64,000 bases of DNA from Hyaloraphidium curvatum SAG 235-1 (lineage: Eukaryota > Fungi > Monoblepharomycota). The DNA is taken from the NCBI GenBank assembly GCA_025558095.1, contig JAIVFI010000045.1:142728-206727 (forward strand). Direction: 5' to 3'. Position numbers and translations under genes: made by a program. This document shows positions 2,625 to 64,000 of this stretch, in pieces (within the stretch, counting starts at the first letter, position 1; each line of letters starts with the position of its first letter). The notes beneath the pieces were generated by a model, which was not told the origin of the DNA, did not search any database, and worked only from the letters and a program-made list of their open reading frames with translations.

Positions 2625-4114
2625 ATGACCTCAATAGGGTCTGCATCTGCACCTCAAGCCGCTGAGGCAAAAGCGGCGCCGCCGGCGATCCCAAAGGCGC
2701 TTTCTCGGACTGCCACCGTGCTTTCTTCTTCACGGATGCGCCTCACCGTGTTCCTCAGCCGACACGGCGAATCGGAGTTCAATCTCACTGGCCGCGTTGG
2801 CGGCGATTCGGACTTGAGCGCCATGGGCCACGTTTACGCCCGGAAGCTCCCGGAAACAATGGCCAAGGTGGGCTGCCTCCCACGTCCGAGCTTCGCGTCG
2901 AAACCGCTAACCTCCCTCGTCCGGCTCAGATTCTGCCTGAATCGGTGGAAACGTTGCACATTTGGACGTCAACGTTGCGGAGGACACATTCCACGGCGGC
3001 TCATTTTCCGGAGAACTATCCCCGGAAGAGCTGGTCCGAGCTCGACGAAATCTACGCCGGGGATTGCGACGAGTACACCTACGAGGAGATTGAAGAAAAG
3101 TGGCCCGAGGTCATGGAGGACAGGGAGCGCGACAAGTTCAACTTTCGGTGGGTCGTTCTATCTGGGAATCTCGGTCTCGCTGACGACAGTCGGCCCACAG
3201 GTATCCGAACGGGGAGTCTTACTCGGATATCACGGATCGGCTGCTCCCATTGCTCCACCATTTGCAAGATGTCCTCTCTTCACCTTCCTTCCTGTCGTCC
3301 GAGGATCGGTCTCCGCGGGAAGCGGTCCTCATTATCGGACATCAGGCCGTCCTGCGTTGTGTCCTCGCCATGCTGAAGAAGAACGTGGCAGACGACGAGG
3401 TTCCTTACGTCAAGGTTCCGTTACACACGCTGATGAGGGTGGAGTGGGGAGGAGACAAGCCCGCCCTGGAAAAGCGATGGTGTGTTCATCGATCGTTCCA
3501 TGTTGGCAGGCGCTCATGTCTTCCTCATGTTCTGAAGGCGCATGGACATTCCCGGAGCCGATACCCATCGGGAAGCGCAGGCAAAACGGACTAATGCTCC
3601 GCCGGAACCCGAAGTTCCCTACTCGCCGATCTATTTGTCGAGCTTGAAGCCCGACATCGAGCTTCCACTAGCTCCTGCAAAGGCCGACTCGGCTCAGAAC
3701 ACACAACCGGCCGCCGTCGAGGACTCTTCGACAAGGAACGGAGGCAAAGCAGGGCCGGACGAAAGCGCGGCCACTTCAGCAGGGCCATTGCCCATTGTTG
3801 GACACGCTGCTGTCGGGGCCTCGGTTTCGCACGCGGCTCCAACACCCATCAACACCAAGCCTCCCATATTTGCGCTTGCGTTGACCCCTCCGCCGGGCCC
3901 TTCGGCATTGGGCGGTGGGGATCAGGCGGACCTTGTTCCAACCTTGATCCGCGTGCCGTCTGTTGTCGACGTTGCGTTGGTGGCCGAGAATCTGGACTCT
4001 AAAGTCGACGACAACAACAACCCGTCGCTGCAGCTTCCCAAGGGGTTGCCAACTGGGCCCTTTGCGGATCGAATGAACAGGGGGAAGAGCTTTTCGTACG
4101 GAGATTCCCATTGA
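2625..4114 (+). CDS. Histidine phosphatase, fructose-2,6-bisphosphatase-like domain with low-complexity C-terminal tail (multi-exon)
   Basis: RHGESEFN..GGDSDLS, IWTSTLRRT, LDEIYAGDCD..TYEEI, RYPNGESY, IIGHQAVLRC, VPLHT across spliced exons. Confidence 0.8.
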
Positions 4115-4167
4115 TCGTTGGTATAGAATTATGTAACACTTCAAGCTCTTGGCACCGTCCCATTCTC

Positions 4168-7100
4168 TCACGCCGAGCCAGAAGGACGAGGTTGTCCGAG
4201 AAGCTTCGCCAGCGCGCTCGACACTGGCGCAGTCTTGAGCCTTTCCCTTTCGACCATGCTCTCGAAAGAATCCTCTCGTTCCTCCTCCTCGTACTGCCGC
4301 AAGTAGTCCCGCCCTTCGTTCAGGAACCTCCCCACTTCGTTGAAGAATCCGACCGCCCTCTCCCGGTCCCCCTGGTTTCCGTCCCTCGCTTTGTGCAGCT
4401 CCCGCGATATCATGCCCTTCCAGGTGTTGAGGTCGTTCCAGCTCGCGGTCTGCTTGGCCTCCAAAGCCTCGTGCTCCTGCGTCAAGCGCGCCACATCTTT
4501 TCTGAGCTGATCATTCTCGCGCTCCAGCTGGTTCAGTCTCCTTAAGATGCCCGACAGGCCATCTTCGCGATCGGAATCAGTTGATCCGTCCACCGAGTCC
4601 ATGATTGGCGTCACTTCATCGTCGAGGGAGGCAGCAGAAGGGGCGCTGGCCCGGACTCCATCCAGACGATCCTGCGACCCCAGAATGACGCGGTCGTCCT
4701 GAGTTTGGTGTTGTCCGTGCAGAAGCCGCGATGAGCCCGTCGATTCTTTCAGAGGTCGTTTCGCCGCGGCACTCTCCGCGCCCGATTCCTCCAGCTCGAG
4801 ATCGTCAAGCTTCCGCTTACTGCGGCCCACCGGCTCCGATTTCCGACGACTGCCTTCTTTAGACGCCTGAATGGCGAAGTGCGTGAGCACCATGGCGAGG
4901 GAAGCCTATGAATGACTAACCGCGCCACTTTCGATCGGCAACACCTCCGACTTCCGTGCCTTGGCCATCGCACCACGTTCCCGCGCCAATGCGTTGCAAA
5001 GCTTGCAACCTCTGTTCACAAAAAGATTGACTGTATCCACGAATCGATGCGTTGGCTCCCCTCGGCACTCAAAAACAACGCGGCGACTGGATCCTTTGGT
5101 TATGCGCGTGGGATCCTGGAAAAGCTGCCCCTTGTTCTCCACCCTGCACTGCACTGCCAGAGGATCATCCGGTTGAAGATCACGCACCACCATCGCCGCG
5201 ATGTGGGGGTGAGTGTCCGCAAGCGTTTCTTTGACCGCAGCCGCCTTGCAGTCCCTGCAGCCATAGTGCACGAAATAGTTCACCGTATCCGCGACTCGGT
5301 GCGTTGGCTCTCCCCGGCATTCGAAAACGACGTGGCGACGGGATACTGGAGATAGGAGCGTGGGATCCTGCAAAAGCTGGCCGCTGTTTTCTTCCCTGCA
5401 CTTAACCGCCAACGGATCGTCCGGTTGAAGATCGCGCACCACCATCGCCGCGATGTCGGGGTAGGCGTCCGCAAGCGTTTCCTTAACCGGTGGTCCCTTG
5501 CACTCCCTGCAGCCATTGCGCACGAAAACGCCGACCGTCTCCACTTGTCGGTGCGATTGCTCCCCCCGGCACTCGAAAACGACGCGGCGACTGGATCCTT
5601 TGGATAGCAGCGCGGGATCCTGGAAAAGCCGGCCCTTGTTCTCCTCCCTGCACTGCACCGCCAACGGATCATCCGGTTGAAGATCCCGCACCACCATCGC
5701 CGCGATGTCGGGGTGAGTGTCCGCGAGTGATTTACCGGCTGCTGCCTTGCAGTCCCTGCAGCCATTCCGCAAGAAAATTTGGACCATGTCCACGAATCGG
5801 TGCGATGGCTCCCCCCGGCACTCGAAAACGACGCGGCGACTGGATCCTTTGGATAGCAGCGCGGGATCCTGGAAAAGCCGGCCCTTGTTCTCCTCCCTGC
5901 ACTGCACCGCCAACGGATCATCCGGTTGAAGATCCCGCACCACCATCGCCGCGATGTCGGGGTGAGTGTCCGCGAGTGATTTACCGGCTGCTGCCTTGCA
6001 GTCCCTGCAGCCATTCCGCAAGAAAATTTGGACCATGTCCACGAATCGGTGCGATGGCTCCCCCCGGCACTCGAAAACAACGCGGCGACTGGATCCTTTG
6101 GATAGCAGCGCGGGATCCTGGAAAAGCCGGCCCTTGTTCTCCTCCCTGCACTGCACCGCCAACGGATCATCCGGTTGAAGATCCCGCACCACCATCGCCG
6201 CGATGTCGGGGTGGGTGTCCGCAAGCGTTTCTTTGACCACAGCCGCCTTGCATTCCCTGCAGCCAACGCGCAAGAAAACGTGAACTGCCTCCGCAAATCG
6301 GTGAGCTGGCTCCTCCGGGCACTCGAAAACGACGTAGCGACTGGATCCTTTGGATATGAGCGTGGGATCCTGAAAAAGCTGGCCATTGTTTTCCTCCCTG
6401 CATTTGGCCGCCAACGGATCATCCGGCTGAAGATCGCGCACCACCATGGCCGCGATGTCGGGGTGAGTTTCCGCAAGCGATTGCTTGAACCACTTCCTCG
6501 CCGGTTCGGGAGACTGCTCGTCGCCATCAGAGCCGTTCGCAACGCTCTGCCGATCATCACTTCCCGCCTGCAATCCGTGCCCAGGCAGATGCAGCTGATC
6601 ACCAGCGGCATCCTCCGGTTCCGAATGAATGTCATCCTCCGCGCTGGCGGCATCCGTCTTCTCCCAACACAACGGGCACGAGGGAGGGTTCTTCCTTAGA
6701 GCAAAGCTCTTGATGACGGCACTCCAAAGATGGGAAGGATCGTCCGGGCATCGCAAGACGACCATCTTGTTGGAAAACTTTCTCAGCTCAGCCGGATTCT
6801 GCCACAGCTTGCCACCGTTGATGGGATGCCCTTTGCACTTCAGGGCTACCTCCGAGTTCTCGTCCACGTCCTGAGCTACCATGCTGGCCAAATCAGGGCG
6901 CAAGGGCCTCGGTGCCTTCAAGAGGGGCGGCTTCTCGAGTTCGTCCGCATCGTCCTCCTCTGAACTAGCCCCTTCTGCATCCTCGGCAGAGGCCAATACC
7001 GGATCTTTCGGCGTCGATCGAGTCCCTCTTGCTTTGGTCAGCTTCTGCGTAGGCGCTTCATCGCTCTCAAGAGGAGGCTTCCGCGTCCGGCGGCGTTTCG

Positions 7101-52141: not shown

Positions 52142-53531
52142 ATGGCCACTTCCGCCGCCGCGCCCGCCAAGGCGGCGGCCGCCAAGTCGTCGACCTTCGA
52201 GACGCGTGGGTTTTGCGGCCCGCCGCGGCCCGCCCGCGTCCCCACGTTGCTGATGCCGACTTCCGCTCCGCCCCGCTTCTCCGCGGCTCGTCGGTCGTTC
52301 CGGCGCCGCAGTCGCGCCCATCAGCGCAGCATGTGCCGTTACTGCCATCGGTCGGTCCTCTTCGGCCCGTCCCGGGCCCCGCGGAGCCTTTTGTCTAACT
52401 TGAGCCCGCTCCTCCCGCTTCCGACCGAACTTCTTATCTCTTCTGGACATTCTGCACCCTTCTCCGACTTGGTTCCCGCCTTTGCCCGAACCTCTTTTGC
52501 TTTTGGACCTGTTTGGCTCCTCTCTGCGTTGGTTCTGGCCTCTCTCGCCCATCCCGCTGGCCCCGGACAGCCATGTACCCCGTGGACGTCGTCCGCGCGC
52601 TCAAGATGGCGTCTGCGACGGGCGGCGGCTACACGATCAAGCAGTTCATCGCCGTACACGGCGTCAAGGGCCTGATGAGCCAGGGCGTGGTGCCCGAGGT
52701 CATCCGGGCGACATGGATGCGGATCCTCAAGTTCTTCTTCTTCCCCATCACCCACGAGAAGATGTGGGGCAAGCCCACGTCCAAGGGCACGCCGTATGAA
52801 AAGGGGCTGGCGGGGACGGTGGCCGTGATCCCCGAGGTCATGACCATCACGACCTTGGAGCTGGCGAAGATCGGCCTGCAGCTCGACAAGGACAAGAAGT
52901 ACGGCAACAGCATCGGGAAGCTCGTCGGGGACGTGTACCGGCGACAGGGCGTGGCGGGCTGCATGATGGGGTGGCAGGGGGTCCAGTTGAGGCAGAGCTT
53001 GTGGACGGGGACCTACTTCGCGACGCTGGACTACTTCAAAAAGGTGTCGGACGGCCTTGTCGCGGGCGCGATGCCGGAAAAGACTCCGACGCGGGCCGCT
53101 GTCGTTGATTTTTCGGCCGGGTTCTTTGCGGGCGTCGCTGGCGCGTGGGTGATCTTCCGCGCTGTGCTATGGCTTTGTGTTGACGGTTCCTCTCGGACTC
53201 AGGATGGCAAACACCCCCGTTGACGTCGTGCGGACCAACATCCAGAAGCTGGGCCTTTCGGCGAACCCCGGATACTCGCCCGCGTCGCTGGCGGTCAGCC
53301 TTACCCCGATGATGAAGATCGGATCGGAGATCGTCGCGGCCAAGGGAGTCGGGGGCTTGTACTCGGGATTCCTCTTTAAAGCACTCCATATGGGAGGGTC
53401 GTGAGTCTCCGTCAACGCAGCGGATCAATTCGTCGTCTAATCGTGAATATCTGTGATACAGCGGCGCCTTTGTCGCCATGCTCATCCCCGTCTTCTCGCG
53501 GCTCATGGGCGTGCAAAAGTCGATCATGTAG
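52142..53531 (+). CDS. Mitochondrial carrier family protein, multi-exon
   Basis: YPVDVVRA, TLELAKIGLQ and TPVDVVRT carrier signature repeats. Confidence 0.85.
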
Positions 53532-53640
53532 GACACTTTGTCACAAGCGTTGCCCTGGTCGGATGTAGGCTGCATTGTCGTTATAGATCGATGGTACTGA
53601 CTTCTCGTGTTGTGGTCGCTGTGGATCTATCTAGCTAGGA

Positions 53641-53735
53641 TAGTGCTGGTATCAAAAAGATCAGGACTCTCTAAGTGTGAGAGCGCAATCAAGCCAGAAA
53701 CCCACCTTTACACTATTGTTTTGCTCACTGGAAGT
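53641..53735 (-). ncRNA. Candidate Fanzor omegaRNA scaffold ending at the element right end (..CCAGCACTA)
   Basis: Lies immediately 3' of the Fanzor stop. Nested stems CTGG/CCAG, GATTG/TGATC and CTCTC/GAGAG; TAGTGT (53710-53715) can pair with the terminal GCACTA (53641-53646). Confidence 0.55.
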
Positions 53736-54699
53736 CTATGAGCTCTCCTGCGCTTCCCAGTGCTCACGCGTGTACGTCTTGGGCCTCTTCTTGTAGACGA
53801 GAAGCCAGAGAGCAATGACGAGCAAGTTGCGCGCAGAGTTGACGTCCCGAGCCCAAAACCGTCCACAACACCAGTCTGTTTCGCTTTGGCAGACTTGGAG
53901 GCCGTGAGCTTTCTTCGGGGTATCGTCGTGCTGGTGCTTCACTGCCACCAGCGTCCGTGTCACGTGTCTGAAAGATTTCGAGCAATACTGGCTCGAATAA
54001 TCCTCTCCCACGTCGACGAAGAACTGATTGTTGTCCGGTTGGAGGAACCGAACCAGGGAACGGCGCCCTTTGCGCACAGATACCGGAAGGCAGCCACGCA
54101 TCGTAGGTCGGAAGGTTGCGGCACCAAACGCCACGATTGCCGGCTTGTCTGTTCCCTCGGCCAAGCACTAGCGCCGGAACCTTCTTGGCGTAGTAGACCT
54201 GCTGAGCAATGTACGCCTGCCAGCGCCGGTGTGCCACAGCGTCGGAGAGCGTCACTTCCCACACACGGTCCAGGATGGCAAACACCCGGCCTAAGTGGTT
54301 CGCAAGTGCCTCCTGGTTGAGCGTCTTAGGCGTTCCAATGTCCGTGAACGCCGCGCGGCTGCCGAGTGCCTCCTCCAGCCTAGCCGTTGTCTCCTCAGCC
54401 TGTCGACGTGCCTTGGTGTGTTTGCGCACGTTGTTGGCCGAGATGCTGAACGAGTCCAACTTGCCCATCCCTTCCAGCGGATGGTTGCCGTTTGCAAGCC
54501 GGTCCTCCTTCCGTAGCTCGCCAAGGGTAGCTCGCACCCCGGTCATCGGGCGCTTGACACCCGGATCGATGGAGACCACGATCGTTTCGTCCGGCATGTG
54601 TTCAAAGGCATTCCGAAGTGCCTCCGAGATCTTGTCCACGTCTCCCACCCACGCACCCGTGCCGGTGCGTTTGGCCTTGCGGTTGGGATCGGCAGCCTC
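53736..54699 (-). pseudogene. Fanzor1 (eukaryotic TnpB-like) RuvC region; frameshift near 54165-54180; 5' part cut off by LTR insertion
   Basis: RuvC-I VVSIDPG (D at 54565-54567), IVAFGAATF, RuvC-II VGEDYSSQYC (E at 54003-54005), Zn-finger Cys, RuvC-III WARDVNSARN (D at 53844-53846), terminal RP..Y.R. Confidence 0.88.
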
Positions 54700-54775
54700 T
54701 GCGAAGGTACAGGACGTCTGACATTCGGACAAGGGTATTTTCATTTTCGGTTCGGAGGCGTGGAGGCGTCGGTCC

Positions 54776-54866
54776 TCGCGATCGACTCGTGATCGACTCG
54801 CGATCGACTCGCGAGTGACTCGCGAGTCACTCGCGAGCGACTCGCGAGCGACTCGCAAGTGACTCG
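54776..54866. repeat. 11-bp tandem repeats with palindromic TCGCGA cores in the LTR U3 region (mirrored at ~60720-60810)
   Basis: About 8 copies of TCGCGA(T/G)(C/T)GAC. Confidence 0.85.
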
Positions 54867-54886
54867 GCACAGCCACCCTCCTGGGA

Positions 54887-54894
54887 TATATAAA
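54887..54894 (+). promoter_or_regulatory. LTR TATA box (TATATAAA); mirrored at 60691-60698 on the minus strand
   Basis: AT-rich box in a GC-rich LTR, just after the U3 repeats. Confidence 0.7.
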
Positions 54895-55181
54895 GAGCGG
54901 GACATGTAACAGTACAATCTTGATCGCCAGTTGACTCTACGTGCTCTCCGTGTCGTTCGACCACCGTGCGGAACCCCGCCCGGCCGGATCCTCGTTCTGA
55001 GAGCCCTTGGGACGCACCCCGGGAGACATCCCGTAACCTCTTTCCCCCGGCTACAGTCAAGTATCTTCAGCGCTGTTCGCTTATTCATATTCAGGGCCTA
55101 TCCGACCCGAAGAGCCGAGCGGGATTCGCGCGCCGGGTTAGAGCTTCAGGCCCGGTTCCGACCCGGACCGTCGCACTGGTC

Positions 55182-58100
55182 CGACGTCGGCTTCTTGCAC
55201 TTTGCGCAGGGCATCCCGGGATCTGACGTCGGCAAGGTCAATAGCACTGATGCCCCCGACATCGGGTAGCACCTCAAGCAGTGCCGGATGAAGGAACGCC
55301 AGGTCTCGCTCAGGCACGTCTGCCGGGTCGACCTGTGCGTTCGTCGTTGGGATCGGCAGGAGGATCTGCGTCTCCGGTGCCGCAGCCTCGGGCAGGGTCC
55401 CCGGATCGCTCCACAGGGTTCCCTCCACTGCGGCAACCGTGGCCGGGAACTCCGTGCCAGACAGCACTCGCTCCATTGATTCACAATTGACTGAGGAACC
55501 CGCAGTAGCTCGTCCCGAGTCTGACTCGGTGACTGGGGTTGACGAAGAACGGGAAGTCTGACCGAGATCACTCCCGGAGAGGAATCCGGGCGCCCGTCCC
55601 CCCCCAGAAAAAGAAGAAAAAGGCAAGGGGTCGGGAGGGTTTGGGGGCCAAAAGGCAGGGATGTCCAAGATTTCCTCGGGGTCGCCCATAGGCACGTCCT
55701 CGTCGGGCGACGGCGCCACGAGCTGACGAGACAGGAAGTCGGCGTTGGAGTTCGCTTTGCCCGAGCGATGGATGATCTGGAACCTGAAGTCCGAGAGCCG
55801 GAGGATCCAGCGCTGTAGGCGGCCCGGCTTGGAGGTCTCCAAGAGCCATTTGAGGGCGCTATGGTCGGTGACCACCTCAAACTCGTCCCCGATCAAATAC
55901 GCCCGGAAATGCTCGCATGCCCAAACAACGGCCAGGGCTTCGCGCTCCCGAGTGTCCCACTTGCGCTCGTTCGGCTGCAGAGCGCGGCTGGCGTAGGCGA
56001 TGACGTACTCCTTGCCATCGGAGTCCCGCTGGCTGAGCACCGCGCCGAGGCCGATATCGCTGGCATCCGTGAACAAGACGAAGCGCTTGGAAAAGTCGGG
56101 GCGACGGAGCACGGGCGCCGACGTAAGCCGTTCCTTTAGCATACGGAAGGCGGCCTCGCATGCGTCGTCCCAGGCCCGAGAGACCGAGACGCCGTCCTGC
56201 GTCAGGCGGGTGAGCGGGCTGGCAATGTTGGCGTAGCCGGCAATGAAGGGGCGATAGTAGTTGGAGAGGCCGAGAAACGATTGGAGCTCCTTCTTGGTCG
56301 TTGGGCGGGGGAACTGGTCCACCGCGCGGGTCTTCTCGGGGTCGACCTTGAGGCCGTCGGCGGTGACGTAATGCCCGAGGTATTTGACCTCGCGGCGGAA
56401 GAACTTGCATTTGGCCAGCTTCAGAGTCATCCCGGCCTCGCGCAGTCGGTCAAAGAGGAGCTCCAGGTGCACGAGGTGCTCGTCGACCGTCTGCGAGAAG
56501 ATAATGATGTCGTCGATGAAGACCACCAAGCAGTACCACTGGAGGCCGGCGAGGAGCTCGTCCATGATCCGAGCAAAGGTTGCAGGAGCGTTGGTAAAGC
56601 CCATGGCCATCCGCTCCCACTGGTAGAGACCGCGGTGCGTCGTGAAGGCCGTCTTTTCCTTGTCCTCGTCGGCCACCTCCACGTGCCAAAAGCCGGAGCG
56701 GATGTCGCAAACGCTCCACACCTTGGCCGCGCTGAGGAGAGCGAGAGTGTCGCTTGGGTTCTTCATCGGGTAGACGTCGCGCTTGGTGGCGGCGTTGAGC
56801 TTCCGGTAATCGATCACCAGGCGCCATTCGCCCGAGCCGTGCCCTTTTGGCACCATGATGCAGGGCGTGGCCCAGGGGCTTCGCGAGGGGACGACTACGC
56901 CCTGCACGAGCAGGTCGTCGATGATCTTGTCCATTTCCCCGCGAAGCCGGAACGGGGTCCGGTACGGCATCTGGTGGATCGGCTTGAGGTCGCCCGTGTC
57001 GATCCGGAAGCGATGGTTGCGCAGCTTGCCGATCCAAGGACCAAACACGTCCCGGTAGCGGTCGCAGAGCTTATGGAAACGAGGTTTGTCCCCCTCGCTC
57101 AGGATCGTTTGGTCCATCTTGAGCTCGATAGCCTCGACCGGAGGAGGCTCCACGCCGGGAGGCTGAGGTGGTCCAATCGATCCCGGCGAGGGCACCGCGA
57201 ACAGATCGATGGTCTCCTCGACCGTGAGCGTGGATTCGGCCGGTTCGGTGTGGGGCAGCTCGGGCTCCAGCATCGAGATCTGCGCGGGAGCCAGATACGT
57301 GGGCGGTTCCGGAGCGAGAAATCCAGGAATCCGCACGCGGAAGCGGCCGAGGTGGGTGCCCGGGCCGATCGTGACCGGTGTCGTCCCGTAGTTGCGGATG
57401 AGAATCGGCAGCCGACCGTCTCTGTCGGGCGTCGCCGACGGGATGATGAAGAGGCGATCGAACGGCGAAGTGTTCGGCGTCTCGATGACCCCTGTCAAGT
57501 CCATCTCCACGACGGTCGCCAAGGGAGTCGTCGGGGCCAGCTCAGCGGTGATCGAGACGTCCTCGTTGGGGTAGACCGTGATGGAGGTGGTTGAATGGAG
57601 CGGGGCGACCAGGTGTGATCCGAAGAGCGGTCGCGCAACAATGTGCATTGGCACGACGACCCCCTCCGGATCGTCCTTGAAATAGAGGACCGGCGTCTCC
57701 CAGTCCATCTGAACGCGTAGGGCGGAGAGCCAAGGGGTGCCGAGGATCACGTCGTCCATGAGACCGTCCATGATGGCGACGTCCATGACGCAGTGTTGAT
57801 TCCCGACCAGGATGTCCATCTTAGCAACTCCGCGGACCCACATGGTTCCGCCGGCCGCGGCCGTGCTGAGGGTGCCGAGTGTCCATGGTTTGATCGGTGG
57901 CGACGGGTGGATCCGGCAGAAGAAGGACGACCGAACCGCCACCACTGAGGCACCGGAGTCGACGAGGGCCGCGGGGGTATTCACGCCGTTGACCCATGCC
58001 GAAACGCGTGCCGCCTGATAGTGGAACTGCACTTGCGAAGTCCACGTCCAGCGATCCGGCGGAGGGGCGACCGGAGCAGGTGGCCGCGGGCGAGGCCGAG

Positions 58101-58596
58101 GGCCAGGCAGCGGTGGTCGTGCGTAGGCGGAAGGAGGAGGGGGCCTTTCGAAAGGTCCGGGAACGGCGCGGACGGTCGGGCCCTCGTGCATAGGTGCATC
58201 CGCTGATCCCGCGTCCGCATCCTGTGCCGCCGGTTCACCGTTTCCCACGACCTCGACCGAGCCGGGCGACGCCGAATCCGCTGCCGGCGGCGGGGCCAGG
58301 GTCTCGTCGATCGGCATGAGCGCCTCCCGCTGCTGACGAACGGCGGCCTGTCGAGCTGCCTCCGCCTCGAGGAAGAGGATGTACTCCGTGCCCCCGAAGG
58401 GCCAATGATGAACGTGGTCCTCCGCCGTCGGTTCATCGGTCGCGGAATCCGACAACTCCGGCGATCCGCCAGGAGATGAAGGGTCCGTGCCGTCCGGCAG
58501 CGGGGAAGTTCCAGGAAGAGGTTCCACATGTGGTTCAAGAGCTTGGATCTCTGCCCCCCTATGGCCGTGCGGCACTGAGGGCAAAGCTAGTTTTTT
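55182..58596 (-). CDS. pol: Pol N-terminal part: aspartic protease, reverse transcriptase, RNase H; cut just before the integrase
   Basis: LVDSGAS; WRLVIDYRKLN, DIRSGFWH, GFTNAPATF, FIDD; TDASDIGLGA, EREALA, TDH, ADFLSR; ends LRKVQEADV at the breakpoint. Confidence 0.95.
58549..58596 (-). promoter_or_regulatory. -1 programmed ribosomal frameshift signal between gag and pol
   Basis: Slippery A AAA AAC directly before the gag TAG, followed by hairpin CTTTGCCCTC/GGGGGCAGAG; pol is in the -1 frame. Confidence 0.85.
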
Positions 58597-60242
58597 GGCA
58601 TCGAAGGGGTGTTGCCGAGGCGAGACTTCCAGTTGAGTGGGCGGCGGTTGGCATTCTTCTCCAACTCCCAGCACTCGTCCTGAGCATGCCCATCCATGCC
58701 ACAGAGATGGCAGTGGCGAGGCTGGAAGCGCTTCTGGTCGCGGTACTCCGAGGTGAAGGGCCGGCGATCCTGGCGCTCCTGCTGCTGGCGGGGCCGATCG
58801 ATCGGAGGAGGCCTCGCGGGGGGGTTCGACCTGGTCTCCGCGGCCTGAACCTGATGGCGAGGCGACGGCAGCAGCTTGGTGATGAGCTCCTTGATCTCGA
58901 CGAGGTCGCTGTTCGGCCCCGAAGGCGGCAACGGCTGGCTCCGACGAGACTGGAAGGGGACGAAACGGCGCGGAGGCCGGAACGCAGACTCCCCCGGCGG
59001 TCCACCGGTGGGCCTGCGCTCTCCCTTAGGCTCCAGCAGCTTTGTGAGAGCCTGCGTATGAGCCAGCAGCACTTCCGTCGTCGCCTTGTCGGTCGCCTTG
59101 GAGGAGCCCGAAGACGAGTGCTGGCCGACCAGAGCCGGAATCTCCGAAATCGAGTTCTGGCCCAGGAAACGGATGTCGCGCGGCTGCGCAGGGCCCGATG
59201 CTTGCATGACGGTGCGCATCTTCTCGATGACCTTGGTGACGGAAGTGCGGTTGATGAGGTGATCCCCGAGGAGCTCCAGCGCCTTCCCGCGTAGCTCCGG
59301 GCGCAGTCCGTAGAGCAGGTTCTGGCCGTACACGCTGTCTTGCACTTCCCTGGTAGGAAGCTGATCGCCGCAGTGCGAGAGGAAACGCGTCTCGGCCAGG
59401 GATACGCGGGCAACGAAGGCGTCGAGGGTCTCATCGTTGGTCATCTGAATCGTGTTGTAGTGCCGGCGATAATGCATCGATGCGTCGCGGGGCTCGAAGT
59501 GGTAGCGTAGCCAGGCAAGCACATCGTTCTGGGTCACCGGAGGATAGGTGGCCGTCGCGGGATAGTCCGGAGGGCGGTTCTGCGGCGTGATGTTGTGCCA
59601 CATTGCGCGCGGCAGAGGCCCAAGGAAGACCGGGAAGACCTTGACGAGGTTGTTGATGGAGCCGAACGCCGTGAGAACCGTAGTGAGGTCGCGGAAGAAG
59701 TCTTCCGGGTCCTGCGTAGCGGGATCGAAGGGCTGAACAGAAGCAGGCAGCAGCTGAGCCGGGAGCTTGGCGGCTCCGCCCTGGCGATCCGCCTGGGGGA
59801 GGCCGGTGCTTCCATCGTTCGGCGGCTGAGCGCCAACGATGGCCCGTACGGCGTCGACGAACTGCTGCGGCTGGAGACCAGCGGCGGCAGCGTTGACAGC
59901 CGGGGCTTGCTCGCTCCGCTGACCCTGCTGCTGTGCGGCGAGCTGCTGGAGCTGCTGCGCTGCAAGCTGCTCGGCGGCGGCTTGCTGTTGAACTTGGGCA
60001 GCTGGCAACTGCTGAGCGGTCTGTTGCGCCACGAGCTGAGCGGCAAGCTGATCGGCGACGGCTTGCTGGGCGGCTTGCTGGGCGGCGAGTTGGGCGACGT
60101 CGTTGGCGGCGGCGCCGACTTGCTGGATCGCGGCCTGCGCAGCTTGGATAATCGCCTGGGCCTGCGGGTTGTTCTGCAAATCGTTAGCTTCCTGAGGCTG
60201 CTGAACCTCCTGCTGAGGGGCGGCTTCTTGAACGGGGTCCAT
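58587..60242 (-). CDS. gag: Gag with Q/A-rich N-terminus and CCHC zinc knuckle
   Basis: Q..DETLDAFV.R (retrotransposon gag motif), GLRPEL, CHLCGMDGHAQDEC. Confidence 0.92.
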   Translation of the reverse strand: MDPVQEAAPQQEVQQPQEANDLQNNPQAQAIIQAAQAAIQQVGAAANDVAQLAAQQAAQQAVADQLAAQLVAQQTAQQLPAAQVQQQAAAEQLAAQQLQQLAAQQQGQRSEQAPAVNAAAAGLQPQQFVDAVRAIVGAQPPNDGSTGLPQADRQGGAAKLPAQLLPASVQPFDPATQDPEDFFRDLTTVLTAFGSINNLVKVFPVFLGPLPRAMWHNITPQNRPPDYPATATYPPVTQNDVLAWLRYHFEPRDASMHYRRHYNTIQMTNDETLDAFVARVSLAETRFLSHCGDQLPTREVQDSVYGQNLLYGLRPELRGKALELLGDHLINRTSVTKVIEKMRTVMQASGPAQPRDIRFLGQNSISEIPALVGQHSSSGSSKATDKATTEVLLAHTQALTKLLEPKGERRPTGGPPGESAFRPPRRFVPFQSRRSQPLPPSGPNSDLVEIKELITKLLPSPRHQVQAAETRSNPPARPPPIDRPRQQQERQDRRPFTSEYRDQKRFQPRHCHLCGMDGHAQDECWELEKNANRRPLNWKSRLGNTPSMPKN

Positions 60243-60390
60243 GTTTGGCGAAGGGGAATGAACTTGGTTGACGGAATACGGTTGACAGAAAAGAGTGGCA
60301 GTCGACAAGCGCCGGTGCCAGGCGAAGTTGTTTTTGGATTATCGAAGTCGAAACTGAAGTCGAACGAGGTGTCGAAGACCCGAGAGCAGG

Positions 60391-60408
60391 ATCACGGAGG
60401 TCGGACCA
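60391..60408 (-). promoter_or_regulatory. Primer binding site TGGTCCGACCTCCGTGAT (probably tRNA-Tyr)
   Basis: Begins 1 nt after the LTR CA and starts TGG; the implied tRNA end AGGTCGG-A-CCA has G72/A73, typical of eukaryotic tRNA-Tyr. Confidence 0.75.
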
Positions 60409-60409
60409 G

Positions 60410-60885
60410 TGCGACGGTCCGGGTCGGAACCGGGCCTGAAGCTCTAACCCGGCGCGCGAATCCCGCTCGGCTCTTCGGGTCGGATAGGCCCTGAATATGA
60501 ATAAGCGAACAGCGCTGAAGATACTTGACTGTAGCCGGGGGAAAGAGGTTACGGGATGTCTCCCGGGGTGCGTCCCAAGGGCTCTCAGAACGAGGATCCG
60601 GCCGGGCGGGGTTCCGCACGGTGGTCGAACGACACGGAGAGCACGTAGAGTCAACTGGCGATCAAGATTGTACTGTTACATGTCCCGCTCTTTATATATC
60701 CCAGGAGGGTGGCTGTGCCGAGTCACTTGCGAGTCGCTCGCGAGTCGCTCGCGAGTGACTCGCGAGTCACTCGCGAGTCGATCGCGAGTCGATCACGAGT
60801 CGATCGCGAGGACCGACGCCTCCACGCCTCCGAACCGAAAATGAAAATACCCTTGTCCGAATGTCAGACGTCCTGTACCTTCGCA
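60410..60885 (-). repeat. LTR copy 2 (476 bp), flanked by both PPT and PBS
   Basis: Inverted copy of 54700-55175; no differences seen by eye. Confidence 0.95.
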
Positions 60886-60900
60886 CGCCCCCACCCAAAA
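60886..60900 (-). promoter_or_regulatory. Polypurine tract TTTTGGGTGGGGGCG
   Basis: T-run plus G-rich tract immediately 5' of the LTR TG on the minus strand. Confidence 0.75.
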
Positions 60901-61027
60901 GAAGGCGCCGCCCTCGGCGCCACGAAATCGAAGATCCTCCGCGGAGTGACGTCATGCTTGCAGTAGAAGATGTTGAAGGCCGAGGTGGAGACAACAGATG
61001 TTGGAGAGTGTAGGGCCGAAGGGTGGC

Positions 61028-62033
61028 TTAGGCGTCCTCAAAGTCGACGTCGGCGTCCGCCTCGTCGTCGCTCGGCGGCGGGGCGCGGAGCCGGCGGGTA
61101 AAGCCGAGAGCGAAGGCGGCATGCACGGCTGAGCCGTCCGCGGCCGAGGGGGTGTAGACCGGGGGCATGGTCGACTTGTAGGGAGCGGCCGGGATGTCGT
61201 CGTACAGGGCGGCCAAGAGGCCGTCGTCCTGCGAGACGATGGAGGAGGCGTCGCTGCTGGACACGCTCTCGGGGCGAGGAGCTGGAGGTTGCATATCCCC
61301 AGCCTCATCGTCGGAGGTGACGAGGTCCTCGTCCTTGACGCGGCCGACCGGCGTGGAGGTGACCACGGCGGGCGTCGTTTGCCCCGCCAGGGGAGCCACT
61401 TGATTGCCGAGGAAGCGACGCAGGAGGGCCCGTTGCTCGTCGGCGGTCTTGGTGAAGTGCTCGCGCTGCGCGTTCAGGCCGGCCGTGAGGAGCGTGGTGT
61501 GGTCTTGAGCTGAAAGCATGAGCTGCTTGTGCTGCTCCGACCCAAATCGCTGCAGATGGGCCGCCAGGACGCTCTTGAGGTCGGCCGCAAACTCCGCCAT
61601 GGGGCCATTGTTGTGACGGGCGAGATTGGTCTCGACGACGGTCTCGATGGTGGTTTCGAGGTTGGTCCCGGTCTGAGCAACCAGCCCGGCGAGGGAAGAG
61701 CCGAACTCCCTCAACTCCTCGATGGTAGCTTCGTCCACCAGGAGAATGCCGTTGAAGTTCTGACGTTGAGCCTCGAGCACCAACGCAAGCCGGTCGAGCT
61801 GCGTCTCGATGGCACCGAGACGAGCGTCGTCGGTCCGGCGCAAGGCGGTGACGGCGAACTCAAGTTCGCGGTGGCGGCCACTGAGGACCACCTGGAGCTC
61901 GTCACGCTGCTGGCGGATCTGGGCGTCCAGGCGGGCCTCTTGCTGCTCGAGCGTCGCCGTTACGCGGTCAAGAGCGTGCTGCTCCAGGTTGCCGACATTG
62001 ACGAGGGTGTTGAGCACCGGGTGGAGTGCGTCG
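61028..62033 (-). CDS. C-terminal ~334 aa of an extra retrotransposon ORF (env position), coiled coil plus acidic tail; 5'-truncated by the inversion
   Basis: Open GC3-rich frame, same sense as gag/pol, stops ~130 bp before the PPT; heptad-rich LEQQEARLDAQIRQQRDELQ. Confidence 0.7.
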
Positions 62034-63676
62034 AGACCAGCGCGCTGATCCGCTTCGTGCGAGACGGGGAGCTCCCTCCCAACGTGAATCTGGCCAAATT
62101 CTGCAAGAAGTACGGCGAGCAGTACTTCCTCGCTACGGACGGCGTGCTCTGCCGGCGCGATGTACTCGCGACTGGTACCCGTCGTATCCCGGTCACCCAG
62201 CTCGTGATACCGCACGAGCTGAGGGAGGCCTACCTGCAACGTGCGCACGACGATCCCCTGAGCGGGCACGTCGGGCGACACCGGGCGTACAGCAATCTGC
62301 GGCGCCGCGTATATTGGGTCGGCATGGCGCACGACGTTCGCCGCTGGACGCGAGCCTGCCTTACATGCATGACCCGGAAGATGCCTTCGGTATCGAACCA
62401 GGGCTTACTGAAATCGGTTCCTCTCACAGGTCCCAACGAGGACATCTACATCGACTACATCGGCGAGATCAATCCGGCCACGCCCCGCGGCAACAAGTAC
62501 CTTCTCGTCGTCTACGATCCGTTCACTAAATGGGTCGCGGCGTATCCGACTCCGGACCTCTCTGGGCCGACGACGGCGAAGCTGCTCTATACGCGATGGA
62601 TTCTCGAGCACGGTCTTCCGAAGCGGATTCACCACGACAACGCCTCGAACCTGGACAACCATTACATGGAGTACCTGCTCAAGCTACTCGGCATCAACCG
62701 GGGCCTGGTCACGGTTGGGCATCCCAGGGCTTCCCTCGCGGAGCGCCCGAACCGGTGGATCATCGACGCCCTGAGCGCAGCGGTCTCCAAGAACTACCAG
62801 ACATGGGACGAGGACATCGTGGGGGTCATCTTTGCCTTCCGGACCTCCATCCACGCGACGACCGGCGAAACTCCGTTCTTTCTGATGCATGGTCGGGATG
62901 CTCGTATTCCGCTCGACCTACTTTACGACGAGACCGAGATTCGCGAGCCAGTGCACCTGCGGGCCAGCGACGAGGAGGACAAGAAGACAGAGGATGAGCG
63001 CCGGCGGACCTACGTCGTGGAGCTCGTGGCGCAGCTTCGTGCGGCCTACGACCTGGTGGCCGAGAAGATGGCCGCAGCGGCGGAGACTCGGAACGCCAAG
63101 GCCAACGCTACCCGGCTTCCGATTACCTTCCGCCCCGGCGACCTCGTGCTCATCTGGGGACCAGAACGACCGCGCAAGGGCGAGCCGGGCAAGTTCGTCT
63201 CTCGTTATCTTGGGCCCTACCGCATCGAGGAGTCAGGCCACACCGAGCTCACCTGGAAGTGTAGACACGTCTACGAGACCGACCACGTCACCACTGTGCA
63301 TGTGGACCGGCTGGCGCGCTACAAGCCTTGGGAGTCGGCCACCTTCAACGCGCGCTCGTGGAACGCACGCGCCCCGGAGCTCGCCGCCGGTGAAGAGCTC
63401 GATCTCTCGGAACCGGTGAACGAGTTCGAAGAGGAAATCGAGGTCGAGAACGCGCTTGGGAACGAGCAGGAGTACACCGTCGAGGACATCGTCGGCCACG
63501 AGGGCCAGGGTCACGGACTCAAGTTCGAGGTCAAGTGGCGGGGCTTCGCTCGCACGACCAAGCTCCCTCTGGACATGTTGCACGGCGCCATAGGGATCGT
63601 CCGCGCCTATGCCGATCGCGTTGGTCTCCAGCTCCCGACGGGTCTCCCCAGGCGCATGCGGACTCGGCGTCGCTAG
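62029..63676 (+). CDS. Pol C-terminal part: integrase (HHCC, DDE, GPY/F) plus chromodomain
   Basis: AHDDPLSGH..CLTC; IDYIG, HDNAS, AERPNR; GPYRI; EYTVEDIVGH..FEVKWRGF. Confidence 0.95.
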
Positions 63677-63746
63677 TAACACCAACGACGTCTATCCGGT
63701 CACAGCACTACCATCTCTGTGCTCCGATCCCCGGCTTTTCACTGAC

Positions 63747-64000
63747 TCAAACCCGACGTACTACCTCGAGCCTATCCTCGACCCCCTCGAACGCCAACTT
63801 GTGATACCCGGACTGAAAATGCGTGTTCAGATTGCCCAGGAGGCCCTTAGCCTTGTGCTTTACCAGATGGCACCACGGGAACGAGCATACCGCCACTTCG
63901 CCCTTGGTGGGGCTCCGGTACAGTTCGCCGGCGTACGTTCCGGCAATCTTCCATCGGAGGAAGGAGCCTGCCGGCACGGCATCAGGGACCTTCTTCGTCA
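63747..64000 (-). CDS. Possible antisense ORF end with BED/C2H2-like zinc finger, open to the window edge
   Basis: CSFPWC..GNLNTHFQSGYH; no stop between 64000 and 63747. Confidence 0.3.
   Translation of the reverse strand, partial: TKKVPDAVPAGSFLRWKIAGTYAGELYRSPTKGEVAVCSFPWCHLVKHKAKGLLGNLNTHFQSGYHKLAFEGVEDRLEVVRRV

Follow-up and report, generated by a model that had tools for sequence, protein, structure and literature searches.

The 64,000-nucleotide stretch of the Hyaloraphidium curvatum SAG 235-1 genome analyzed here (the window; G000:C45:142728-206727, with contig C45 ending at window position 64000) very probably contains, on the minus strand at 53739-54699, the C-terminal RuvC/NUC half of a Fanzor1-type gene that is dead and has been split by a retrotransposon. 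Fanzor1 proteins are eukaryotic relatives of TnpB that act as omegaRNA-guided endonucleases on double-stranded DNA. They are common in early-diverging fungi (PMC10432273, PMC10530073), and H. curvatum, which lies within the chytridiomyceta in the phylum Monoblepharomycota, is such a fungus, as an earlier reading of the letters alone (the sequence-only reading) had surmised. That reading had also proposed a remnant of a TnpB/Fanzor1-type nuclease at this place, and profile comparison and fold comparison both bear this out.

The remnant occupies two minus-strand frames, each of them free of internal stop codons, that are offset by one base and can be joined only through a one-base shift inside a short interval:

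54166-54699, minus strand: frame A, 178 residues, with the linker motif RTGTGAWVGDVD, SIDPG and the RuvC helical insert
54153-54167, minus strand: interval of the one-base frame break between frames A and B
53739-54164, minus strand: frame B, 142 residues, with the AFG..F strand, the alternative Glu, the NUC/TNB region and the RuvC-III Asp
53736-53738, minus strand: stop codon TAG of the Fanzor frame, at the end of frame B

The motifs that had been read in these frames (SIDPG, AFG..F, VGEDYSS and ARDVNSARN) are all present. Frame A, which includes ...IVVSIDPGVKRP..., carries the RuvC-I Asp in SIDPG (codon 54565-54567). In frame B, the canonical RuvC-II position is taken by the Gly of AIVAFGAATF (codon 54123-54125), VDVGEDYSSQYCSKS contains the Glu of GEDYSS (codon 54003-54005), and the RuvC-III Asp belongs to WARDVNSARN (codon 53844-53846), with a Cys/His-rich stretch between the latter two. 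The RuvC D-E-D triad claimed for this copy is thus correct as to the residues, and the one amendment concerns the Glu of VGEDYSS, which is an alternative Glu, the canonical RuvC-II position being held by the Gly of AFG. The three catalytic columns are nearly invariant in a 53-sequence alignment, all three residues are kept in the window copy, and the RuvC-I Asp is invariant in 37 canonical relatives. Likewise, the Gly and the Glu are 40 residues apart and both of their columns are conserved (G544/E579 in A4), and the R, D and N of the RuvC-III R-D-x-N motif, read here in ARDVNSARN, are invariant or nearly so. A non-acidic residue (Gly or Pro) at the canonical RuvC-II Glu, with an alternative Glu about 45 residues downstream, has been described for Fanzors and for 'TnpB2' (Jiang et al., PMC10530073), and the active site of the window copy reads as this Fanzor-type rearranged arrangement.

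Linking these frames to Fanzor1 required a wider profile and a fold comparison, because searches of the solved structures with the single sequence or with the subfamily alone were too weak, returning SpuFz1 (the Fanzor1 of Spizellomyces punctatus) at an expectation value (E) of 0.58 or nothing relevant. Specifically, frame B by itself matches PF07282 (Cas12f1-like TNB) and the NCBIfam TnpB model at E 0.002 each, the PF07282 match scoring 18.7 bits against a cut-off of 26.3 and so falling under the threshold, and it is to frame B that the C-terminus of SpuFz1 aligns in the single-sequence search. Three uninterrupted environmental homologues, P0002 (804 residues), P0003 (743 residues) and P0005, are 58–61% identical to the window pieces and come from eukaryotic genomic DNA, as their introns indicate. 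When the profile of this subfamily was run against 1.84 billion representative proteins it found 255 relatives, most of them 550–750 residues long and matching over the last ~200 positions; PF07282 is above the Pfam cut-off in nine of the nine tested (566–712 residues), and the consensus of the canonical relatives is the standard Fanzor1 signature (G.DPGR ... VAFGDA.F ... E.NTSQ.CS.C ... H.VRRC....C...WNRDVNAA.NI). Aligned with these canonical proteins by hhalign, the subfamily gives a probability of 100 and an E of 1.2e-60 over 626 columns; the alignment starts at the N-terminal CCHC knuckle and reaches the C-terminus. A combined profile recovers SpuFz1 at 5.7e-69, PpFz1 (of Parasitella parasitica) at 1.3e-47 and GtFz1 (of Guillardia theta) at 1.6e-46, and is much weaker on Fanzor2 (9e-14) and TnpB (2e-4).

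The fold comparison points the same way. The AlphaFold2 model of P0003 (predicted local distance difference test score 85.4, predicted template-modeling score 0.84) matches the solved Fanzor1 structures end to end, both in Foldseek (E 2.6e-13 to 4.6e-9, template-modeling (TM) score 0.45–0.64) and in VIA-align (Z 15–18, 487–538 aligned residues). Against SpuFz the values are E 2.6e-13 and TM 0.50–0.64 in Foldseek and Z 16–18 over 521–538 of ~600 residues in VIA-align. SpuFz, PpFz and GtFz take ranks 1–7, and other chains match only P0003 residues ~420–743, so that the whole-protein WED-REC-RuvC-NUC architecture, as seen in this intact homologue and not in the broken copy itself, fits Fanzor1 better than Fanzor2, TnpB or Cas12. 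The sequence-only reading had said that it should be given up if neither a profile nor a structural match to the RuvC fold could be found; matches of both kinds exist. One can imagine instead that the motifs arose by chance, or that they belong to some other RuvC-like or RNase H-fold protein outside the TnpB/Fanzor group, and the single-sequence matches of the window pieces do lie under curated thresholds. Nonetheless, the profile-to-profile agreement runs over the whole length of the protein, and the full-length match of the homologue model to three solved Fanzor1 proteins outranks all Cas12 and TnpB chains; we give this idea next to no chance of being right. Given that agreement between the subfamily and canonical Fanzor1, and given that about 870 codons are open in the whole split gene where a stop would be expected about every 34 codons at the local base composition (our estimate), the open frames and motifs are not a product of chance.

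It is informative to set this Fanzor1 remnant beside the characterized systems. SpuFz1 (PDB 8GKH, 9CEU-9CEZ) likewise comes from a zoosporic early-diverging fungus, and the resemblance extends over the whole length of the fold (P0003 model residues 1–737 against chain residues 49–633) and to the order of the motifs (G.DPG,.FG.A.F, E..TSQ.C, H....C and W.RD.N...N, followed by a C-terminal RP..F/Y tail). However, only 13–16% of the structurally aligned residues are identical, the subfamily of the window copy is about 200 residues longer, and the window copy, known here from its sequence, is split and frameshifted. PpFz1 and GtFz1 (PDB 9CF0, 9CER) also match over their full length (Z 15.0–15.5), although these matches are more distant than that of SpuFz1 and the hosts are a Mucoromycota fungus and a cryptophyte, respectively. 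TnpB (ISDra2; PDB 8H1J/8EXA), Cas12f and Fanzor2 (ApmFz2; PDB 9B0L) share the RuvC and zinc-ribbon (TNB/NUC) core described by PF07282, but their match is limited to this C-terminal core (Z 9.8–10.9 over ~180–290 residues), and ISDra2 TnpB has the canonical RuvC-II Glu where the window subfamily has Gly and an alternative Glu ~40 residues downstream.

The zinc region sets the subfamily further apart. A CCCC zinc finger is present in SpuFz1 and TnpB (PMC10432273), and the canonical relatives have four invariant or nearly invariant Cys in the NUC/TNB finger. In contrast, the CCCC pattern of Fanzor1 (C-x2-C ... C-x(2-5)-C) is absent from the subfamily, which keeps the first, third and fourth Cys, has Ser, Pro or Arg in place of the second in every member, and carries a C-V/I-K/N-H motif (that is, C-x2-H) about 13–16 residues further on. 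In frame B the relevant codons are Cys at 53982-84, Ala at 53943-45, Cys at 53889-91 and a Cys-Cys pair at ~53865-53870. The CSKS of the window copy had been read correctly and taken for decay; because the intact relatives likewise lack the second Cys (they read CSKP, CSKR and CSTS), it is better described as a trait of the lineage and not as a lesion, and the zinc site of the subfamily appears to be remodeled and partly His-based. At the Cys of the C-V/I-K/N-H motif, which the five relatives all keep, the window copy alone has Ala (53943-53945), and this change is possibly a further lesion.

The gene remnant stops abruptly at 54699, where the following features begin:

54696-54699: target-site duplication, CCTC on the plus strand and GAGG in the orientation of the gene
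54700-55175, plus strand: 5′ long terminal repeat (LTR) of Ty3/gypsy type, TG..CA, 476 bp, followed by the primer-binding-site bases of its family; the element is antisense to the Fanzor gene
55138-58674, minus strand: protease, reverse transcriptase and RNase H frame (Pfam Asp_protease_2, RVT_1, RT_RNaseH), a block inverted relative to the adjacent LTR
60410-60885, minus strand: second LTR copy, in opposite orientation, part of the rearranged insert
61529-63676, plus strand: integrase frame (Pfam Integrase_H2C2, rve), with the insert reaching the end of the contig

It had been proposed that an LTR insertion at 54700 parted the gene from its N-terminus, that the target was duplicated over 5 bp (GCCTC) or 4 bp (CCTC), and that the N-terminus would resume beyond 64000. 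The LTR does start exactly there, and the 4-bp duplication is the one found at both junctions. The third statement does not hold, as the contig ends at that point and the N-terminal half sits at one end of contig C31. With the N-terminal part of the paralogue on contig C37 as query, a search matched C31:560615-561760, where a 1.66-kb open frame (L028:4424-6079, with a Met at 4556) runs directly into the mate of the window LTR (L028:6081-6556), the two being 100% identical. The annotated protein DFJ74DRAFT_687620 (520 residues; L028:4556-6118, G000:C31) is this orphaned N-terminal half, its last 12 residues being encoded by the LTR. At the junctions, the C31 flank closes with ...GACGAGGAGG, and in the orientation of the gene the window flank opens with GAGGCTGCC...; with one copy of the duplicated GAGG removed, the frame crosses the empty site unbroken (...DEMDEE followed by AADPNRKAKRTGTGAW...). 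Identical TG..CA LTRs at both junctions, a short duplication, and protease, reverse transcriptase, RNase H and integrase together identify the insert as a Ty3/gypsy LTR retrotransposon, and other elements of its LTR family also made 4-bp duplications (CTTA on C43, GAGT on C42). Because the LTRs are identical, the insertion must be very recent. C31 and C45 share an end sequence of at least 6641 bp at 100% identity; the two contigs therefore abut, and the insert measures about 12.6 kb.

The interior of this insert is less simple. Its pieces match reference copies in mosaic fashion, the protease–reverse transcriptase–RNase H block being inverted, and a model of simple nested insertion was rejected for that reason. 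The mosaic is made of one Ty3/gypsy family and has microhomologies of 14–16 nucleotides at its joints. Both halves of the gene lie at contig ends and stop at a very abundant, identical repeat family, with a rearranged insert between them, and it is worth considering that they derive from two different Fanzor copies brought together by LTR–LTR recombination or by misassembly. What speaks against such a union is the matching pair of 4-bp duplications and the in-frame junction, the exact colinearity of the C31 frame, frame A and frame B with P0002 and P0003, in which nothing is missing or doubled, and the similar distance of both halves from the same homologues. Furthermore, the bases beside the C31 LTR mark it as the polypurine-tract (3′) side and those beside the window LTR mark it as the primer-binding-site (5′) side, which argues for one antisense element. 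We consider an origin from two copies very improbable.

Apart from the question of the split gene, the window from 54700 to 64000 and G000:C31:562080-572809 (L028, L033) form a shared retrotransposon nest, and the two contigs could be joined. Copies of the 476-bp LTR are abundant, and the family is very young (for example, G000:C43:367334-377861, C42:235155-245809 and C11:502083-532855); full elements measure about 10.5 kb and have 4-bp duplications, and tandem arrays on C11 share LTRs. A 441-bp LTR query finds at least 27 identical copies genome-wide, often paired ~10 kb apart.

The second lesion is the frame break, which had been placed near 54170 and is indeed present in the assembly, confined to 54153-54167. 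Just upstream of this interval frame B meets a TAG (54168-54170), and just downstream of it the resemblance of frame A to its homologues ends, after ...PALVLG. An intron was considered as the cause and ruled out, there being no room for one because the intact homologues are colinear across the break and have no extra residues. The earlier judgment that the copy is dead, on the strength of the insertion together with the frame break, is one that we share. It may nonetheless be overstated if the break is an assembly error or the insertion is heterozygous, in which case a working allele may persist. The break sits in a GG/CC context that reads do not cover, the 870 codons are otherwise clean and keep the catalytic residues, and an insertion with identical LTRs is young enough to be polymorphic. 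But the assembly shows zero differences across the 6641-bp contig overlap and among the 27 copies of the LTR query, so random indel errors must be rare, and it holds no empty-site contig, both halves of this copy matching only C31 and C45. We regard a surviving allele as unlikely, although it deserves more weight than an origin from two copies; given that the repeats of the assembly are error-free, the break is more likely real than an error.

Before these events the gene was under purifying selection for most of its history, given the lack of stops, the retained catalytic residues and a ratio of nonsynonymous to synonymous substitution (dN/dS) of 0.13–0.20 for the split gene against its homologues, with dS saturated. 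Frame A is 59–61% identical to P0002 and P0003 (dN/dS again 0.13–0.20) and frame B 58%.

Downstream of the gene, the environmental homologues offer an indication of where the element may end:

53641-53735, minus strand: 3′ flank of the window copy, tentatively a candidate right end and candidate omegaRNA scaffold, with a conserved terminal motif
L030:3775-3846, L031:3330-3401 and L032:2992-3059: 3′ flanks of environmental homologues, whose contigs end ~70 nucleotides past the stop codon with the same conserved motif

The P0003 contigs from three samples all stop 72 nucleotides past the stop codon and the single P0002 contig stops 68 nucleotides past it; this common endpoint is a candidate element end or omegaRNA scaffold. 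The last 57 nucleotides of these flanks are ~93% identical between P0002 and P0003, the proteins of which are 75% identical, and the final 19 nucleotides are the same in L030 and L032 and match window 53641-53658 with 4 edits. This match is unique on both strands of the 64-kb window (128 kb), and 4 of 500 shuffles of the 538-nucleotide flank reach it, making 53641-53735 a reasonable candidate for the scaffold and right end. None of the homologues showed a 5′ counterpart of the motif, a DNA search of the H. curvatum genome with the environmental 3′ flank gave no match, and a metagenome scan for the 19-nucleotide motif returned one bacterial contig, where the match lies by chance within coding sequence.

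Several observations weigh against the reading of this locus as a retrotransposon-split, dead Fanzor1 gene with a candidate right end. The direct single-sequence matches are weak, and the evidence from fold comes from a natural homologue 58–61% identical to the copy, whose own protein is divided over frames and contigs. The match to the 19-nucleotide right-end motif contains 4 edits, the predicted RNA folding of the 3′ region is no better than that of shuffled sequences (z −0.62 for the window copy, z −0.18 for L030), and an Rfam search for an omegaRNA gave zero matches. Likewise, comparison of the flank upstream of the gene on C31 with the flank downstream of it in the window brought up no terminal inverted repeats, and no transposase adjoins the gene. 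The rearranged interior of the insert falls at the ends of two contigs, the places at which assemblies deserve least trust; and the public sequencing runs, which consist of sparse contig sets only, leave 53869-54632 uncovered, a span that includes the frame break.

The genome of H. curvatum holds further members of the subfamily. The most complete is the following:

G000:C37:276790-280099 (L012:3291-6580): paralogue KAI9005058.1, 969 residues, at least two introns, full length, D-E-D intact

The C37 gene and a gene on C13 (KAI9024103.1, 531 residues), both 38–42% identical to the window copy, share with it the RTGTGAW..D.D linker, the PVSVRK motif and the remodeled zinc region, and differ from it in a ~90-residue insert after RuvC-I, in their introns and in a His for the first Cys. 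The C13 gene has no N-terminal half, and its residue in the alternative-Glu column is Gly. On C39 there is a 447-residue N-terminal Fanzor fragment that is 57% identical to the C31 half, and on C1 a small fragment of the same subfamily. C37 is probably transcribed, as a 4189-nucleotide contig of run X2 (a spliced, RNA run) encodes its own residues (...GFTRDPNGR..., ...IPDQVKENF...) around the RTGTGAW segment. An uncharacterized family with intact siblings in the genome had been anticipated; C37 indeed looks intact but is only ~40% identical to the window copy, and the remaining intact Fanzors of the genome are members of different Fanzor1 lineages.

These relatives invite the question of whether the subfamily (the window copy, C37, C13, P0002, P0003 and P0005) is a mobile lineage at all, or a low-copy Fanzor1 lineage that the host has retained or domesticated, the window copy being a lost paralogue. 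In favor of retention, the paralogues within the genome are 37–57% identical and each lies at a unique place, which argues against recent transposition; no inverted repeats or transposase were found nearby; the C37 model is full length with its D-E-D intact and is represented in the spliced run; and dN/dS is 0.13–0.27. On the other hand, P0003 is identical in three environmental samples, and its contigs end 72 nucleotides past the stop at a motif better conserved than the coding sequence, which fits the end of a mobile element. In addition, the truncated fragments on C39, C13 and C1 resemble transposon debris, and the window copy was dispensable. We think retention with loss of the window copy improbable, about as much so as a surviving working allele, and we rate slightly lower still the proposition that the subfamily is kept and expressed by the host rather than carried as jumping-gene cargo. 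If the latter were true, however, the subfamily would represent a domesticated RNA-guided nuclease of a eukaryote, with the conserved ~70-nucleotide 3′ flank of its relatives serving as the guide-RNA scaffold.

Returning to the reading of the window copy as a dead, split Fanzor1 gene, the history that it implies can be outlined. The gene before its disruption encoded a protein of ~830 residues with an N-terminal CCHC knuckle, a basic cluster resembling a nuclear-localization signal, WED and REC regions and a split RuvC domain. By analogy with SpuFz1, this protein would have bound an RNA from the ~95 nucleotides that separate the stop codon from the right end of the element, and may have cut DNA matching the 3′ guide of that RNA next to a target-adjacent motif. 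A Ty3/gypsy LTR retrotransposon then inserted antisense into the linker just before RuvC-I, duplicating GAGG and parting a 5′ portion of 1.5 kb, which today closes C31, from a 3′ portion of 1 kb, which today closes C45, and the one-base frame break at 54153-54167 is a second lesion.

The window copy is real, but as a dead copy of a gene type already known it is ordinary, and one more broken Fanzor1 changes little. Mention of Fanzors in Hyaloraphidium was not found in searchable papers and supplements. The practical interest lies in the intact relatives rather than in the window copy: the locus puts on record a divergent Fanzor1 subfamily whose zinc site is rearranged and of which P0002, P0003 and the C37 gene are intact natural members, and the short conserved 3′ flank of intact members makes them directly testable as nuclease plus guide. 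It also provides a cleanly dated case of one mobile element inactivating another, and it shows that contigs C31 and C45 of the assembly abut.

On the other side of the remnant lies a convergent gene:

52513-53831, plus strand: mitochondrial carrier gene, convergent with the Fanzor gene (Pfam Mito_carr, 2e-15)

Its transcript has a 61-nucleotide GT..AG intron at 53401-53461, which is spliced out in a 629-nucleotide contig of run X2 that covers 53300-53400 and 53462-53831, and the 3′ end of the transcript is antisense to the last ~95 nucleotides of the Fanzor frame. Elsewhere in the genome, the C39 fragment adjoins a 920-residue frame for a reverse transcriptase of non-LTR type, in more AT-rich DNA; these two frames occupy L029:394-3156 and 4102-5445, both on the minus strand.

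A genome-wide profile search gave 63 matches, which include other Fanzor1 lineages in several young copies. One of these lineages, different from that of the window copy, is carried on a young ~5-kb repeat on C2, C31, C1, C7 and C14, at the following loci:

G000:C2:357953-359914 (L036:3504-6365)
C31:258145-260106 (L037)
C1:1444950-1446911
C7:693722-695683
C14:723263-725047

Two of these copies are 97.7% identical over 5 kb, and the open frames of the lineage (950–1230 residues) encode several CCHC knuckles at the N-terminus, together with a canonical C-x2-C ... C-x4-C finger. Another family of five copies is found on C4, C5, C16, C25 and C36. Finally, an intron-split Fanzor1 gene (AYGAARF, VNEYLTSQMCSWCG and FWMRDVNS; G000:C3:632733-633226, L038:3470-4467) belongs to a family of at least 10 equal-scoring copies, including those on C5, C6, C7, C11, C15, C28 and C35.

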